Assembly: GCA_000388065.2 (NCBI GenBank)
Contig: KB932207.1
From: Fonticula alba ATCC 38817
Lineage: Eukaryota; Protista; Nucleariida
Length of the DNA: 12,577 nucleotides
Reading direction: 5' to 3' (one strand)
The notes under the pieces were generated by a model, which did not search any database, was not told where the DNA came from, and saw nothing but the letters and a program-made list of their open reading frames with translations. Positions within the stretch are counted from its first letter, which is position 1, and each line of letters begins with the position of its first letter. The position numbers and the translations under genes are program-made. Below are positions 2,114 to 11,650 of the stretch, one piece after another.

Positions 2114-3598
2114 ATGGCCCAGGTTCGCGCCAACTCGGTTGACGGGCTGTCCGACCCCACCTCGGAGGACTTCCGCCCCTGGCGCGAGTTCCTCGAAACG
2201 GCCCTCAGTGCGTGCCGGCCTTGTGAGCATGTCACACGCCGCCCCCGGTCGCCCGCTGACCCCCGTCCTCGCCTCTCCCCTCCCCCTTCCCCCCTCCTCG
2301 CCACCTGCCCCACGCACCAGCCTCCGCACGGTACCTGTCCGAACAGTGTGAGGACATCTTCAAGGACGCGCCCACGCATGTGGAAAATGCCTTCATCCAC
2401 TTTGGCCCGGGGTCGCACTTCTTCCGGACCATCGTGCGCCTGACCTCGGAGGGAACCTGGCCACCGACCGGCGGACCCAATGGCGGCATCCCCGGCGACC
2501 TGGCGGACCTCGGCCCGCCGGACCTCCTCCCCCGCCTGGCCACCATCCCCAATCCCGAAAGTGCCACCACCGGCCTGGCCGTGCTGAATTACCTGCTCCG
2601 CTGCGCCCATGGGCAGAATGACACCCTGATGCACATCTCGCGCGGGCTGATGCGCTGCCGCATCGCCAAGGCCCCGATGGCGCCGGGCCGCGGCGGCCGC
2701 GACGGCACCCCCACCCCCACCCCCACCCCCACGCCGGCCCCGCTCGCAACCACCCCCCAGCCGGCTGGCGCCTCTTCGGGCCCGGCCGCGGCCACCTCCG
2801 CCAGCGGTAGCAACAGCAGCGACATCGACCCGGAGCCCGGGACCCCGCAGGCGGCCGGACACCCACGCGCCGGGGCGGCCCGCTCCCGGCAGCAGCCCCG
2901 CTATGACATCCTGCTGTACTGCTTCGCCTGCCTGGGCCCGGTGTCCAGCGCCATCAAGACCCTCCTGTGCAAGACCTGCCGCGAGGACAATGCCCGCGTG
3001 GGCGGCCAGCAAATCTGCACCAAGGAATCCGACTGCACCCAGCTGTCCCTCAAGAACACATCCACCTGCAACAAGTGCAACCGGACGCACCGGCGCGCGC
3101 GGCCCGGCACCGGCGCCGGTACGGCCGGCACCTCCAACAGCCCGGACAGCCCGGCCGCCGTGCAGTGCTGGATCCCGGCCAAGGAGCGCGCCCCGGCCCT
3201 GCAGACCGCCATCCAGCAGGGCCCCAGCCGGCTGGGCTTCGCGGTGCGCCTGCGGCCCATCCCCCCCCCGGCCGGGGCCGGCGATCCTGAAGGCGGCCCG
3301 GAGGCCGGCCACCACTCGGCACCCGGCCCCGATGGCGCCGCGGGCCCCGTGGCCCTGTGGGTGGGCTCCGGCATGCCGGACGATGTCGCCGCCAATGGTG
3401 GCCTTCTGCCTGGGGCCCAGTCGGCGCCGCTGGTCTCGCCGCAGCCGCAGCCACAGCCGCAGCCCCATGCCTCGGGCCAGCCCCATGCGCCTGGGTATGC
3501 CCCCCCGCACGAGTCCTTCCGTAACCCCTTGCAGCCGGTCTACCATCACGTCCCTGTGCCCAGCACGGACTTGCATCAGCTCGCCCTCGACCTGCAGC

Positions 3599-3632
<34 letters not shown>

Positions 3633-4476
3633 TCAACAACAGCAGCAACATCAACAACAGCAGCAACATCAACAACAGCAGCATCTCATCCAGCAGCAGC
3701 AACACCAGCAGCAGACCCAGCAGTATCAGCGGCCGCAAATCCTGCTAGAGGCCAGCCATGATGCCAGCTACTCGCCCGAGCTCACAGCCAGGCCCGGCAC
3801 GCACAAGCACTTTCTCGAAGCCCTGGAGGCCACCCCCGGCATCTGGGAAACGGTGGCCCTGATTGCTGAGCCCTCAGTCGGCGACCTGTCGACCCTGCTC
3901 GCACCCTCCCGATCGGCCCCGGCCCCGGCCTTGGGACATGTCACCACCTTGCAGCGGCTGGGGGCCTTCTCCCAGGGCACCACCGGGCCATCGGCCGAGG
4001 TGGGCGGGGTGGACTTCTCACCGCCATTGTCGGCCAACACCGCGCACCAGCCGCCCCCGCAGCCCCCGCAGCCCCAGCAGCCCCAGCAGCCCCAGCAGCC
4101 AGCCCTGCCGGTGGATCAGGCAATGCCCGTGCGCCAGCCAGCCACACAGCCCGGTCACCATCACTCCAAAATGCCCGCCGCCCGGGACCCCGGCCGGCCG
4201 GCCGGCGAGATGGACGGTGGCGCCAGCCCAGCGACTCGACCCCCGGCAGCCACGAAGCCCAGTGCGTGTCGCCCGCTCCTTCTCTCTTTTGCCCCGGCCG
4301 CTCGGCCTCCGGGAAGCCTCGGGCACATGAGGGCGCCCCTCGACACTGACAGACCCCCGCCCGCCATACAGGCCACTCCCGTTTGGATCAGCTGGTTAAT
4401 GCATCGGCCTGTCTTTTGGGCCCGGCGGCACAGGAATACTCCCTTCACAGCAGCTCCCCGGGGGTACGCGTGTACA

Positions 4477-4514
<38 letters not shown>

Positions 4515-5447
4515 CTCTTGCCCTTCCTCCTTTTCGCTTGTGCCCCTGCCCTCCCCCCCCCCTCCTCCGCTCTCCCGAAAGGGCGGGGGCCATGGTGCCG
4601 CCGGCTCCTGCTCACCCTATGACATGCTCCTCGCCCCTCCTCCTTCTCCAGCACCAGCCAGCCGACCGGGAGAGCGCGAGCCTCCCCCCGGGCCCAGGGC
4701 CAGGCTCGATGCCCACCCCGGGGGGTGGCCTGGAGACGGCCTCGCCGCCCCCGGCGGCCAGGGCCTCGGTCCCCGGCCCGCCTAACCCGGCCCCGAGTCC
4801 CCCGGCGCCGGTGGCCCCGGCACGCGCCAAGCGCCGCCGCCATCAAGAAAGGTATGTCTGCCTCTGGCCAGCCGCTCGCCCCGTACCACGGCCGGCACCA
4901 CCGGCATGTGGCTCGCCGCCCCTCCCCCTTCGCCCCTGCCCAAGCCCGGACCCTGGGGCTCTTTGGGAAATGCGCCCGCTCTGACACCCGGCCATCCGGC
5001 AGTTCGCGCGACATGCCGGCCACCAAGCGCCCGCATGTGTATCAGGCAGCCGGGATGCCCCTCACCCCCCAGGGCCCCTTTGGCCCGATGATGGGCTCGA
5101 CCCCGGCAGGTGGGGCGGCCTGGCCCGGCGGCTCGCCCATGTTCATGCCCTACTTCCCCGGGCCCTTCGGGGCATTCCCCTTCCCGGGGCCCATGTTCCC
5201 CGGGATGTACCCGCCGGGGGTCTTCCCGGCCGGGGCCGGATTCTTCCCGGGCCCCGCCGGGGCCATGCATCCCCCCCGCCGCCCCCAGTGGCCGGGCGGC
5301 GGCGGGTCCGGCTCCTCGACCGGCAGCGAGTCCGACCCCTCAGACGGTGGGACGGGCTCCTCCTCCGGGAGGGCCTCTGACCAGAGCGACCATGGGTCGG
5401 GCTCGGATTCCGGCTCGGACCCGGGCTCCGACTCCGGCTCCGGCTCT

Positions 5448-5478
<31 letters not shown>

Positions 5479-6550
5479 ACTTCGACTCCGACTCTGGCTC
5501 CGGCTCCGGCTCTGGCTCCGGGTCGGACTCCGATGGGGAGTCCCCGCCCGGCCGGGGGTTCAGCTGGCCGCACGGGCCGGGGCTCATGCCGTCGGTGCCC
5601 GGCGGAGGGCCAGGTGTCGCGGACTTCGCCAACCCCTTCGGCATGGTCGGTGGGTCTCCCTTCCCGCCGCACTGGTCGCCCATGGGCATGATGGCCGCAC
5701 CTCCAGCCCCGGCGGCGGCGGCGGCGGCGGCGTCTCCCCGGGCGTCTAAGCACCAGTCCCGGCAGCTGTCCGGCATCAAGTCGGAGTTCGGCCGGGCGCC
5801 GGGGTCGGCGCCGTCGTCGCCGGCCCCGGGGCGCGGGTCGCCGAGCGACCGGGCCGGCGCTCGGTCCAGGTCCCGGCGCTCGGTCCCGCAGCCCGGCCCG
5901 ATGCCGGCGCCGGCGCCGCCCTTCGGGTTTTCCTTCTACGGCGGGGCCCCCGGCGCCGGGGCCGGGGTCGGCATGTGGCCGCCTATGCCCATGCCCGGGG
6001 GCTTCCCGATGGTTTTGCCTCCTGGGGCGGCCACCGGCGCCGGTCACGGCGGCCATCAACGCCCCATGTCAACAGCCATGATGATGAACCCCATGATGGC
6101 CGGGCCGATGATGATGGCCGGGCCGATGATGGGCATGATGCCGGCCGGGGCCCCCACCGCCGTCGCCCCGGCACCGGGGTCCCCCGATGGCAGTGCCAGT
6201 GCCTCCGACAGCGATCGGCCGGATTCCGGCCCCCCTTCCTCCCCCGACAGCGAGAGTGGCCCCGGTGCCGCCCCGGGCACCGGCAGTGGCGATGATCAGG
6301 CGGCAGCTCGCCAACCGCGGTCCTCCTCGTCCAGGGACAAGAATGGCCCCGGTGCCGGGCCGGCCTCGGGATCGGGCAGCAGCTCCCCGGACCGGGGCCC
6401 CTCTCCGCACACCGGCGCGCATGCCTACCACCCCCTCCGCCATGCGCCGCAACCCCCGCAGCTGTGGCACCCGGCGGCGGCCATGATGCCAATGCCCTTC
6501 CCCCTGCATGGGGGTCCCTTTGCGAGCGGCTTTGTCGGGCCCGGCGGCGA

Positions 6551-6586
<36 letters not shown>

Positions 6587-7064
6587 GGGCAATCGTCGCC
6601 GGGGCGGGCGCGCTCCGACTCCGGCCGACCCGCCGCCGATGATGCTCATGCCGCCGATGTTCCCGCCACCGGTGTTCCCGATGTCGGGCATGCCCCCGAT
6701 TCCCCTGGGGACATCTCCCTCCTCGTCGGCCGGCCGGCGGTCTCGGCGCCGGCGTCGCGAGGGCAGTGGCGGGGGCCCTTCGTCGCGGGCGGCCGACACG
6801 TCGCGGCTTCCCGGCGAGAGCCAGCTCCTCCGGCCTGTCCGGGACCAATGCTCCGATCCGGGGCCCGATGCGGCCGCCGCCGCCGCCGCCGCTGGTGCCG
6901 CTTTGGGCACACACATGCCGATGCTGACCTTCGCGCCGCAGCAGGGCTGGCTCGGTGGCGGTGTCCCGGCCGGCCAGTCATACCCCTCGTTCCCCCAGCC
7001 GGCCCCGGTGCAGCAGGGCTCCTCGCGCGGCAAGCGCCATGGGCCCGGCCCGACCCCCACGTAA
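2114..7064 (+). CDS. Five-exon orphan protein (about 1462 aa), probable nuclear/transcriptional regulator with Cys8 zinc-finger-like motif, polyQ and long low-complexity C-terminus
   Basis: Hand-built exons 2114-2207, 2321-4261, 4372-4463, 4652-4851, 5003-7064 total 4389 nt = 1463 codons including TAA. Introns 2208-2320 (GTGCGT..CAG, branch CTGAC), 4262-4371 (GTGCGT..CAG, CTGAC), 4464-4651 (GTACGC..CAG, (CT)n) and 4852-5002 (GTATGT..CAG, CTGAC) all have matching phases (1,1,0,2). The splice model links ORFs 2114, 2380, 4383, 4538 and 4725. The function call is inferred from composition and motifs only. Confidence 0.72.
2707..2733 (+). repeat. (ACCCCC)n hexamer repeat encoding TPTPTPTP
   Basis: acccccacccccacccccaccccc in exon 2. 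Confidence 0.85.
2920..3090 (+). other. Cys-rich putative two-zinc module C-x2-C-x12-C-x2-C-x12-C-x5-C-x10-C-x2-C-x3-H
   Basis: Translation [57 protein letters not shown], read directly from ORF 2380..4785 and flanked by low-complexity linkers. Confidence 0.7.
3601..3729 (+). repeat. Coding polyQ/QH tract: (CAG)9 followed by 3 x 18-nt unit CAACATCAACAACAGCAG
   Basis: Read directly: CAG x9 at 3601-3627, three exact 18-nt copies at 3628-3681, Q-rich sequence continuing to about 3729. Confidence 0.95.
4481..4511. repeat. (CT)n microsatellite in intron 3 of the large gene
   Basis: tctctctctc run visible directly. Confidence 0.95.
5393..5538 (+). repeat. (GGCTCC/GGCTCT)n hexamer repeat encoding Gly-Ser/Asp-Ser tract
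   Basis: Encodes [48 protein letters not shown]. Confidence 0.92.
6552..6590 (+). repeat. (GGC)n encoding polyglycine
   Basis: ggcggcggc run; [15 protein letters not shown] in ORF 4725..7064. Confidence 0.92.
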
Positions 7065-7814: not shown

Positions 7815-7845
<31 letters not shown>

Positions 7846-8452
7846 CACACACACAGCCTAACCTGCGATCCTCCTCCCCCGTGCTGGCGCCTCGATAGAC
7901 AACCTCCGGAGGCAGATGTCCTCGTCAGTGCGGAATTTCTCCGACCTCTCGGTCGATCTCCTCAATGAGCGGTGCGCAGCATGCGCACACCGTGTCCTGC
8001 CCTCTTCCCTTGCCCCTCGGCATCCTGCAGCTGCCTCCGCCCGTCGTACATGTATGTGTGACTGACCCATCTGAGGCTCTGTCTCTCTCTCTCTTTCTCT
8101 CTCTGTCCCCCCCCCCCGATGCATTGCCTCCCCTGCGGTCCCCTCGGTCCCGGATGGCAGCGTGATGATGGTTTTCGACTACCAACAGGCGATCGAGCAG
8201 GAGGCCAACCAGCTGCAGCAGGCGAGCGCTCGCTTCGCCAAGCAGTCGGCCCAGTGGTTGAGTCTGGTGGAGAGCTTTAACACCGCCCTGAAGGTGCGTT
8301 TCGTGTGCGCGTGCGCGTGCGCGTGCGCACACACACTCAGGAACATATGCCTGGGCGCGCGCTTGGTCCAGCTCTCGGACATGGATTGGGGGAGGCGGAG
8401 AGAGACGGCTCGCTCTCGCTCCACAGTTGTGCATCTCCCCTGACGCCCTCAC

Positions 8453-8491
<39 letters not shown>

Positions 8492-9039: not shown

Positions 9040-9984
9040 TCAATCGCGCGCCGGGGGGAACACCTGCTCGGCGCCCGGGCCCGGGTCCAGTTCGCGCAGC
9101 GTCAGTAGCGCCGCCGGTCCAGCGTGTGCCACGCTCAGTGGCGAGTCGAAATAGGCCCGCGAGGCGGCCTGCCGGCTCAGCTGGATAAGTGCCAGGCTGG
9201 CATGCCGTGCCAGGCAGGCGGGCACGCCCGGGCGAGGGGGATAGGGCACCGAGATCCGGCGGGCGGCCGGTGTCAATGTCGAGACGGCCGAAAGCACACA
9301 GCGAAAGAGCCGAAGCCCCGGGGCCGGGCGCAGGGCAAAAAAAAAAAAAAAAAAGGAAGAGAGAAATACACGCACTCCGCCAGCACCAGGGACGTCATGG
9401 CCTCGAGGATGGGGACCGCGCGCGGGCCGACGCACGGGTCGTGGCGCCCGGCCCCGGCGACCTCGCGCAGGGCCCCGGCCCAGTCGGCCGTCCGCTGGGC
9501 CCGGGCAATGGTGGATGGCGGTCGCATGGCCACGCGGAAGGACAGCGGCAGGCCGGTGGTCAGCCCGCCCTGGGACCCGGCGCTTTGATTGGTGGCCGGG
9601 ACCAGGGGCACAATCGGGCCACGCCCGGCAACCGGGCGCTCAAACGGGCCGGCCGCCGCGAAGGGGTCATTCCAGCGGCTGCCGTGCGATTGGACCGCCC
9701 GGTGCCAGCCATCCCGGCCCATGGCAAAGCCCCGGGCGGCCGGCAGCGAGAGGGCCGCGTGGGCCAGCCGCGCGGGCAGCCGGTCGAACACCGGCTCGCC
9801 CCAGCCGGCCGGGAGGCCGCGCACCCGGACGGCCAGCCGCGCGCCGACCGAGTCCCCGCGTGCCTGGGACTCGGCGATGGCGGCCTCCATGCGCCGGGCC
9901 CAGTACGGGCAGGGGCACCGGACGGGATGGGCGTCCACCTGGGCCCGGGTGAACCAACAGCCCTCCGCGCTGTGAGCCGGCTCG

Positions 9985-10055
<71 letters not shown>

Positions 10056-11126
10056 GTGGTGGTGGTGGTGGTGGTCATCTTCGCAGGCATCGGACTCGAG
10101 GCCCGGATCGCCGGGCTCGGTGCCGGCGGCACAGGCATCCTCGCTGCATGCGGCCCCGGCCGGGTGACGCGGCATGGCCACCCGGCCAACTGCCTCCACA
10201 TATGCAACCACCTCGACACCGAAGGCGCCGGCCAGCCAGAGGTCGGCCACGGCGCCGGCGGCCACGCGCGCGGCCGTTTCGCGAGCCGACGCCCGGCCCC
10301 CGCCCGAGGCACTCGGCAGGAAGGCCCACGGGCTGCTGGCCAGGCTTTGGCGCAGGGCCTGGCGCTCGGCCAGGAGGGCCCCATCGGCCGGGACATCGGC
10401 GCCGGCGGCCAGCCGGTCGGCCTCGGCCAGCCCGGCAAACAGCTGGTCCTGGTGCGCGGCCGATGCCGGGCTGTGCGGCACGGCATACTTGCACCGGTAT
10501 GTGTAGTCCGCATGCGAGGGCCGGGGGGCCGCGTCGCGCGAGGCCGGCTCGGCGCTGCCTGCCGGCCGTGAAGGGGCATGCTCGGCCTCGGGCGCGGCCG
10601 TGGCCGGGGAATGCACCGCCAGGAAGGCCTGGTAGTCCTGCGGCCGGGCGTCCTGGTTGTCGATCATCATGGCCAACGGGGTGCCGAGCGACCGTCCGGT
10701 CAGGGGGTCCAGCCCGCTGAGGATGCGCACCCGGTCCGGCTCATTGCGCTGCGTCGATGGGGGCGAGGGGAGGTGAGATGCACGGGGGGGGGGGGCGGGG
10801 GGGCGGGGGAAATGGCAGCGCCACACAGGCAGACCATGCTACATGACGGCCAGCGGGGAACCGTCACCAGGACACTGGCGGGGCAGACCGGGGGGCGCAT
10901 GGGCAGAGCCCGGCAGCCGGCCCGCCAGCGCGCGCCATGGGGCCTGGCCGAGACGCACCGGGGTGACGAGATGGCTCTGGCCGGGGCGCCGGCGGTCAAG
11001 TTGCCGCTGCACGGCGGCGGCCGGGATCAGCAGCCCGGGCGGCACCCCATCGATTACACAGCCAACCGCGTCGCCGTGCGACTCGCCAAAGGTCGTCACA
11101 CGGAAGAGCGTGTTGAGTGATGACAT
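9040..11126 (-). CDS. ARO2: Chorismate synthase (shikimate pathway step 7), about 565 aa, three exons
   Basis: Exons (minus strand) 11126-10959, 10748-9376, 9196-9040 total 1698 nt. Introns 10958-10749 and 9375-9197 are both GTGCGT..CAG, phases 0 and 2. Family motifs: [90 protein letters not shown](LALIQ). The LVLADxxLIQ end resembles fungal Aro2. Confidence 0.96.
9337..9354. repeat. A18 (T18 on the transcript) homopolymer in chorismate synthase intron 2
   Basis: Visible directly. Confidence 0.9.
9987..10073 (-). repeat. (CAC)7(CAG)22 coding repeat giving H7-Q22 inside chorismate synthase
   Basis: On the plus strand, 22 CTG at 9987-10052 and 7 GTG at 10053-10073, in frame with exon 2. Confidence 0.95.
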
Positions 11127-11650
11127 GCTGAGGAGCCGGGGGCGGGGGCGGGGAAGGTCTAGGCGGCAGGACCTGCTGGGTGGTGGGATCGTGCCCCTCG
11201 CCTCCGGCGCCGGTCTCCAGGCCTGGCCCTTGGATCTTGGGACGGGAGGGCGTACGGCGTGCGGCGCGTGCGGGCCGGGCGATCGGGCGGGCGCGAGGCC
11301 AGGCGTGATTCGTTGCCCGGGGTCACGCGGGACGCTGTAACTCGCGGTTAACTGTCCGCGCGTGGGCGCCGGGCCGGTGGGACCCGTGGAAACCCCGGGT
11401 GTGCAGGCAACCCGCGCGGTCTGAACTGGTGGAACCCGCACTTTGTGAGGCCACATACCTGCAACCCTGACCCGGGCTGGGCGACCGCGCTGCAGCGCCT
11501 CACGGGCGGGGATCTGCTCGTTGTTTTTCTTTCACGGCCGGAAATTGCTCCGGCCCTGGATGAGGGTTGGTGCGAGGGCGTGGGCGCGCGGCCACGCCGA
11601 GGTGGCCCTGCGCGCCTGGCGGTGTTTTCATGTGCGAGGCCGCCTCTACG

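Follow-up and report, generated by a model that had tools for sequence, protein, structure and literature searches.

The locus described here, on contig KB932207.1 of the nucleariid Fonticula alba ATCC 38817, contains a compact cluster of eight cysteines in a long open reading frame, which raises the question of whether a relative of the DNA-binding domain of nuclear hormone receptors (zf-C4) is present in a eukaryote that is not an animal, or whether the cluster represents a zinc-binding module of another kind. Both possibilities had been put forward in a first-pass annotation. In the following, the window is the whole 12,577-nt stretch of DNA that was analysed, and the coordinates of the features of the gene are given in Table 1.

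Gene model and eight-cysteine module

Because the window has a GC content of about 73%, long open reading frames are found in several of its frames. The GC content at each codon position was measured in 300-nt measuring windows. The cysteine cluster is contained in frame +1 of the + strand (codon starts at positions 1 mod 3), which has no stop codon between 2323 and 4785. The data showed that its GC content at third codon positions (GC3) stays at 0.83–0.93 from about 2250 to about 4200, with second positions at 0.26–0.70. This coding periodicity is lost near 4200–4260. Only the frame of the module combines the GC periodicity with an open reading of 800 codons, and the stretch that bears the module is coding.

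Table 1. Features of the module-bearing gene and of the open reading frame downstream
Feature	Position	Strand	Basis
Predicted exon 1, 31 residues	2114..2207	+	ATG 2114 is the first ATG after the in-frame stop 2053-2055
Predicted intron 1, 113 nt, phase 1, GTGCGT...CAG	2208..2320	+	Donor hexamer; frame restored across the junction
Exon 2, main coding exon	2321..4261	+	GC3 periodicity, open frame, composition profile
Eight-Cys module, putative two-zinc site	2920..3078	+	Spacing, non-random clustering, charge
Basic tail NRTHRRAR, adjoining the last CxxC	3079..3102	+	Translation
Poly-Gln/His tract, imperfect 18-nt CAG/CAA/CAT repeat	3594..3714	+	Tandem Repeats Finder
Predicted intron 2 donor GTGCGT, phase 1	4262..4267	+	Point where the coding periodicity stops
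P/G/M/S-rich low-complexity ORF, about 740 aa	4854..7064	+	GC3 0.80-0.93 in its own frame

Predicted splicing of exon 1 to exon 2 gives an open reading frame of 678 codons. The donor hexamer GTGCGT of the two predicted introns is identical to that of an intron in the chorismate synthase gene of the same window. For intron 2, the candidate acceptors place its end at 4371, 4651 or 4761, and an exon beginning at 4762 would stay in frame into the P/G/M/S-rich open reading frame located downstream. This downstream frame belongs either to the gene of the zinc module, as one more exon, or to the next gene, starting from the ATG at 4854. It matched no Pfam family, and its exact product was not on record in an exact look-up. 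The frame contains an (SG/DS) array at 5409–5532, a Met-rich 12-residue repeat at 6093–6131, and a Gly run at 6542–6590. Several other sequence features were also observed around the gene. A perfect (TC)16 microsatellite is located at 4480–4512, inside the presumed intron 2, and two (CA)20 microsatellites, at 7817–7855 and 8450–8490, border an intergenic stretch of lower GC content (62–67%). In the region 1200–2050, upstream of the gene, a weak codon-position GC bias extends over about 800 nt, with positions 1 mod 3 at 0.82–0.87, and it coincides with a 275-codon open reading frame on the + strand (1229–2056), the R/G/P/A-rich translation of which resembles no protein. This bias could be an artefact of composition, or it could mark a 5′ exon or a further gene, on whichever strand.

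The chorismate synthase gene lies on the − strand at 9273–11130, where it was recognized by Pfam in two open reading frames (5.8e-79 and 8.5e-15). It is split by a spliceosomal-type intron, whose donor, GTGCGT, lies at about 10957 and which is followed by an exon starting at about 10748, with the junction reading ...SHLVTP/GTGCGT...GACGCAG/... In its catalytic domain there is an in-frame insertion of His7-Gln22 at about 9985–10075, which corresponds to perfect TGC/TGG repeats on the + strand. Animals are not known to have the shikimate pathway. Since the gene contains an intron and animals are without this pathway, the host is a non-animal eukaryote, which supports the earlier claim, based on the same neighbor, that it is not a metazoan.

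Exon 2 encodes, in this order, an N-terminal region without repeats, which is about 150 aa long and possibly folded, a T/P/S-rich linker, the eight-Cys module, and an Arg-rich tail. On the C-terminal side of this tail, there follow a short ordinary-looking stretch containing one more Cys, the poly-Gln/His tract, an acidic-hydrophobic patch, and P/Q-rich tails. According to its composition profile the predicted protein largely consists of low-complexity P/A/Q/G sequence, and no hydrophobic signal-like stretch was found at its predicted N-terminus. In four small read runs from one 2012 study, which we guess to be RNA, 7–32% of the sampled words from the locus were present.

The eight cysteines are arranged as C-x2-C-x12-C-x2-C-x12-C-x5-C-x10-C-x2-C. 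This spacing, as given in the first-pass annotation, was reproduced exactly by the translation of frame +1, as were two further details of it, namely a Thr following the C-x5-C pair and, C-terminal to the second CxxC, Arg at positions +1 and +6. The eight Cys, all of which are encoded by TGC, span residues 232–284 of the 678-codon gene model, so that the 53-aa module is composed of three CxxC and one C-x5-C, and has no His ligand in its sequence. Eight of the 12 Cys of the 678-aa gene model are contained within these 53 aa. When 12 Cys were placed randomly, at least three CxxC within 60 aa were obtained in only 2 of 20,000 placements, which shows that the clustering is non-random. The module is also positively charged, because together with its tail it contains 11 Lys and Arg versus 4 Asp and Glu residues (net charge +7), while the net charge of residues 271–300 is +6.

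Probable zinc binding and proposed nucleic-acid recognition

Pairs of CxxC clustered in an intracellular protein nearly always bind zinc. In the protein described here the CxxC pairs are clustered beyond chance and the N-terminus is not signal-peptide-like, which is the generic pattern of Cys4 zinc modules. Because the clustered CxxC pairs are found in an intracellular protein, and because eight Cys fit two Cys4 sites, we infer that the module most likely binds zinc, with two Zn(II) ions coordinated by its eight Cys, four to each site. Two successive modules, formed by Cys1–4 and Cys5–8, would be the simplest ligation; a cross-braced arrangement is also conceivable.

The combination of a basic zinc module with a basic tail and Gln-rich sequence is what is commonly seen in transcription regulators that recognize specific sequences. 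Because the module is basic, and is accompanied by the Arg-rich tail, the poly-Gln/His tract and the P/Q-rich tails, the protein is predicted to be a nucleic-acid-binding regulator. In such a regulator, the zinc module and the Arg-rich tail would contact nucleic acid, most likely DNA, and the Gln-rich part could recruit the transcription machinery. We favor the interpretation, to which we assign a probability of roughly 0.55, that the protein is a nuclear regulator, and that its eight cysteines form a two-zinc module that binds nucleic acid, is restricted to this lineage, and belongs to no described family.

RNA or proteins would be equally plausible partners of a basic Cys-rich module, and basic zinc knuckles often bind RNA. 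It is conceivable that the zinc module binds RNA, or that its role is purely structural, stapling together a disordered scaffold protein, for example a condensate or Mediator-like co-regulator; in either case, it would not bind DNA in a sequence-specific manner. The low-complexity composition of most of the protein is consistent with this explanation, as is the fact that the protein may run on into the P/G/M-rich region of about 740 aa. On the other hand, Pfam detected no RNA-binding domain, and the pattern searches found no CCHC knuckle spacing in the module. Overall, we consider the RNA-binding or scaffold explanation unlikely, although it survives better than the other alternatives to the regulator.

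Known zinc folds and the search for relatives

To compare the module with known zinc-binding folds, ten classical Cys-spacing patterns were tried on it. The spacings of GATA, RING, PHD, FYVE, LIM, Zn2Cys6, MYND and the double CxxC ribbon all failed, and Pfam was blank at E ≤ 10. This result agrees with the earlier statement that the module does not fit GATA, LIM, RING, MYND or Zn2Cys6. When the module, the whole open reading frame, its parts, and 17 other open reading frames of the window were searched against Pfam, only chorismate synthase was recovered, apart from compositional noise (such as Tim54 and Med3). Among PDB sequences, the best match of the module was the RING domain of RNF4, in which the last 19 residues were aligned with SQCLRDSLKNANTCPTCRK at an insignificant E = 4.9. 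Other parts of the protein matched Bch1 (E = 0.21) and Mediator subunit 15, neither of which is meaningful; the latter was the sole PDB similarity of the poly-Gln/His part, and it was compositional. A transposase zinc domain was also considered, and it was rejected because no transposase domain was present.

In its design, the module has resemblances to GATA-type fingers and to the RING or C4C4 cross-brace. Similarly to GATA-type fingers, the module has a CNxC pair with a basic tail behind it that ends in Arg-Pro, and it probably follows a treble-clef logic, with a CxxC knuckle and another CxxC at the start of a helix. However, the GATA spacing C-x2-C-x17-18-C-x2-C is absent, there is no Pfam GATA match at E ≤ 10, and the tail of the module is shorter.

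The likeness to the cross-brace, as in RNF4 and CNOT4, consists of the eight ligands, which in their arrangement in four pairs equal the ligand count of RING, PHD and FYVE domains, and of the weak similarity to RNF4, the only one that the module has among PDB sequences, which covers the C-terminal half of the RING. This could mean that the module is a cross-braced RING- or PHD-like unit, which mediates protein–protein contacts as part of an E3 ligase or an adaptor, rather than binding nucleic acids. The central spacings of the module, however, break the cross-brace, because the gaps between ligands 4 and 5 and between ligands 5 and 6 are 12 and 5, versus the defining 2–3 and 2, and the pattern failed even when 2–5 residues were allowed for the first of these gaps. 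Together with the failure of the RING, PHD and FYVE patterns, the absence of Pfam RING or PHD matches at E ≤ 10, and the lack of a His ligand, this makes the cross-braced explanation improbable, slightly more so than RNA binding or a scaffold role.

The structure of the module was also predicted using AlphaFold2 without an alignment. The confidence was too poor for the models to be used, with a pLDDT of 57 for a 77-aa segment containing the module and 39 for a longer piece, the N-terminal 269 aa. The low-confidence prediction was mostly helical, which is unlike zinc knuckles. A Foldseek search of the PDB with the poor model of the module (pLDDT 57) returned nothing at E ≤ 0.001, and a wide VIA-align comparison of the same poor model with 48,161 chains returned only generic helical chains, with the best Z of 4.3.

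The search for relatives in protein collections was similarly negative. A phmmer search with residues 1–266 of exon 2, comprising the N-terminal region and the module, against 1.84 billion representative proteins gave 0 hits at E ≤ 0.001, and not even a self-hit. For a domain of 53 aa, significance at E ≤ 0.001 in a library of 1.84 billion sequences takes a score of about 45 bits or higher, and this search therefore excludes only fairly close relatives. Word-index searches with queries of 801 aa and 127 aa also gave neither a match nor a self-hit, and feature searches of the ESM Atlas, over all clusters, over the named ones and over the unnamed ones, yielded nothing that could be used. In a scan of JGI metagenomes 104 patterns were matched, and 0 loci were confirmed. 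The recognition scores given by a language model, 1956 and 1527, were below the value of 2300 that most known families reach, which fits an orphan protein, but would also fit a fast-evolving protein or a marginal open reading frame. The genomes of the nearest relatives may be absent from the searched collections, and, given that no self-hit was obtained, the locus may be unannotated or differently modelled in public gene sets.

The absence of a homologue and of a self-hit in protein libraries, the low language-model recognition, and the poor structure confidence could also be explained if the module had no conserved function, that is, if the open reading frame were young or decaying, or were an artefact of assembly or annotation, and its Cys did not bind zinc, or formed disulfides or an Fe–S site instead. 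This explanation is quite doubtful, and more so than the cross-braced one, because the codon-position periodicity extends over about 1.9 kb in an open frame of 800 codons at 73% GC, and three CxxC within 53 aa are very unlikely to arise by chance. The variants in which the cysteines have another role were rejected, since a disulfide-rich secreted domain would need a signal peptide, which is lacking, and no ferredoxin-type spacing, as expected of an Fe–S site, is present. With the family, sequence, fold and feature searches all blank, the other option offered in the first-pass annotation, which is that of a zinc-binding module outside the described families, stands by elimination. The module is best described as an unclassified variant among the Cys4 zinc modules, which form a very large class. 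It is a modest lead.

Comparison with nuclear receptors

Nuclear receptors are regarded as an animal innovation (PMC8061703). On the other hand, a stand-alone domain of the Pfam zf-C4 family was reported in choanoflagellates (PMC6792448). Hence, the premise from which the first-pass annotation started, that zf-C4 is specific to metazoans, is dated with regard to the DNA-binding domain itself, which is no longer strictly animal-specific, while it holds for the receptor in which this domain is combined with a ligand-binding domain, because that combination remains animal-specific. Because stand-alone zf-C4 domains occur in choanoflagellates, the lack of a ligand-binding domain would not by itself exclude a kinship of the module with the receptor DNA-binding domain, and the prior for older zf-C4 relatives is slightly raised.

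The module and the zf-C4 domain have several features in common. Both contain eight Cys in four pairs within about 55–65 aa, with the third pair being C-x5-C followed by Thr, and in both of them basic residues follow the second and the fourth pair, each of which is a CxxC. If the two zinc sites were sequential, the ligand order of the module, Cys1–4 and Cys5–8, would equal that of zf-C4. These similarities, especially the four pairs with the C-x5-C and its Thr, and the two Arg residues, +1 and +6, that follow the second CxxC, together with the choanoflagellate domain, which suggests that zf-C4 is older than animals (PMC6792448), are the arguments for the view that the module is a very divergent zf-C4 relative predating the split of animals and fungi, which would be built of two treble-clef modules with helices starting from the second and the fourth pair.

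The module also differs from zf-C4 in several respects. The near-invariant receptor spacing, C-x2-C-x13-C-x2-C-x15-17-C-x5-C-x9-C-x2-C, failed on the module in a regular-expression search. The loops of the module are 12, 12, 5 and 10 residues long, versus 13, 15–17, 5 and 9 in receptors, which means that three of the four differ. A PROSITE-like receptor signature failed as well. The module has AI at the position where receptors have [HNY][FY] before the third Cys, and DN-A-R where they have FF-x-R after the fourth Cys, and no ninth Cys is present within 29 residues after the last CxxC. Thus, in contrast to zf-C4, the module is without the GxHYG, FF-x-R and ninth-Cys hallmarks. The HYG and FF residues, the ninth Cys, and the ligand-binding domain had already been conceded to be missing, and the patterns and Pfam confirmed that all of them are absent. 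In contrast to nuclear receptors, the module is also located in the middle of a Q/P-rich orphan protein, in an organism that is not an animal.

The database searches led to the same result. When the 80-aa stretch containing the module was searched against Pfam-A at E ≤ 10, it matched 0 families, and so not zf-C4 (PF00105) either. Pfam also found neither a zinc-finger family nor the Hormone_recep domain in the open reading frame 2380–4782 or in its parts, with the whole frame searched at E ≤ 0.1. A phmmer search with the module against all PDB sequences gave no receptor chain at E ≤ 10, and the fold searches produced no zinc finger from a model that is too weak to show whether there are two helix-bearing modules. 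The choanoflagellate domains, in contrast, were detected by the ordinary Pfam model, which misses the module. With the family profile, the PDB sequence search, the spacing and the signature all negative, the claim of a divergent relative of the receptor DNA-binding domain found no support, and neither membership in the zf-C4 family nor kinship with it can be demonstrated for the module. What would be left of this claim is a remote relative of the zf-C4 fold at the level of opisthokonts, which kept the C-x5-C and two helix-initiating CxxC and was re-spaced beyond detection by profiles, and this seems to us highly improbable, far more so than any of the other explanations.

If the link to receptors were true, the origin of the receptor DNA-binding domain would shift from the ancestor of choanoflagellates and animals back to the one that animals share with fungi, and a hallmark domain of animal transcription factors would be redated. 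The evidence does not support this link, and the case serves as a caution that Cys spacing alone is no sign of homology. The analysis delimits a concrete candidate domain of about 70 aa, at nt 2884–3114. Read as a putative two-zinc module of a probable regulator, this domain is one more candidate for the lineage-specific transcription factors, a poorly known repertoire, of a deep-branching relative of fungi.
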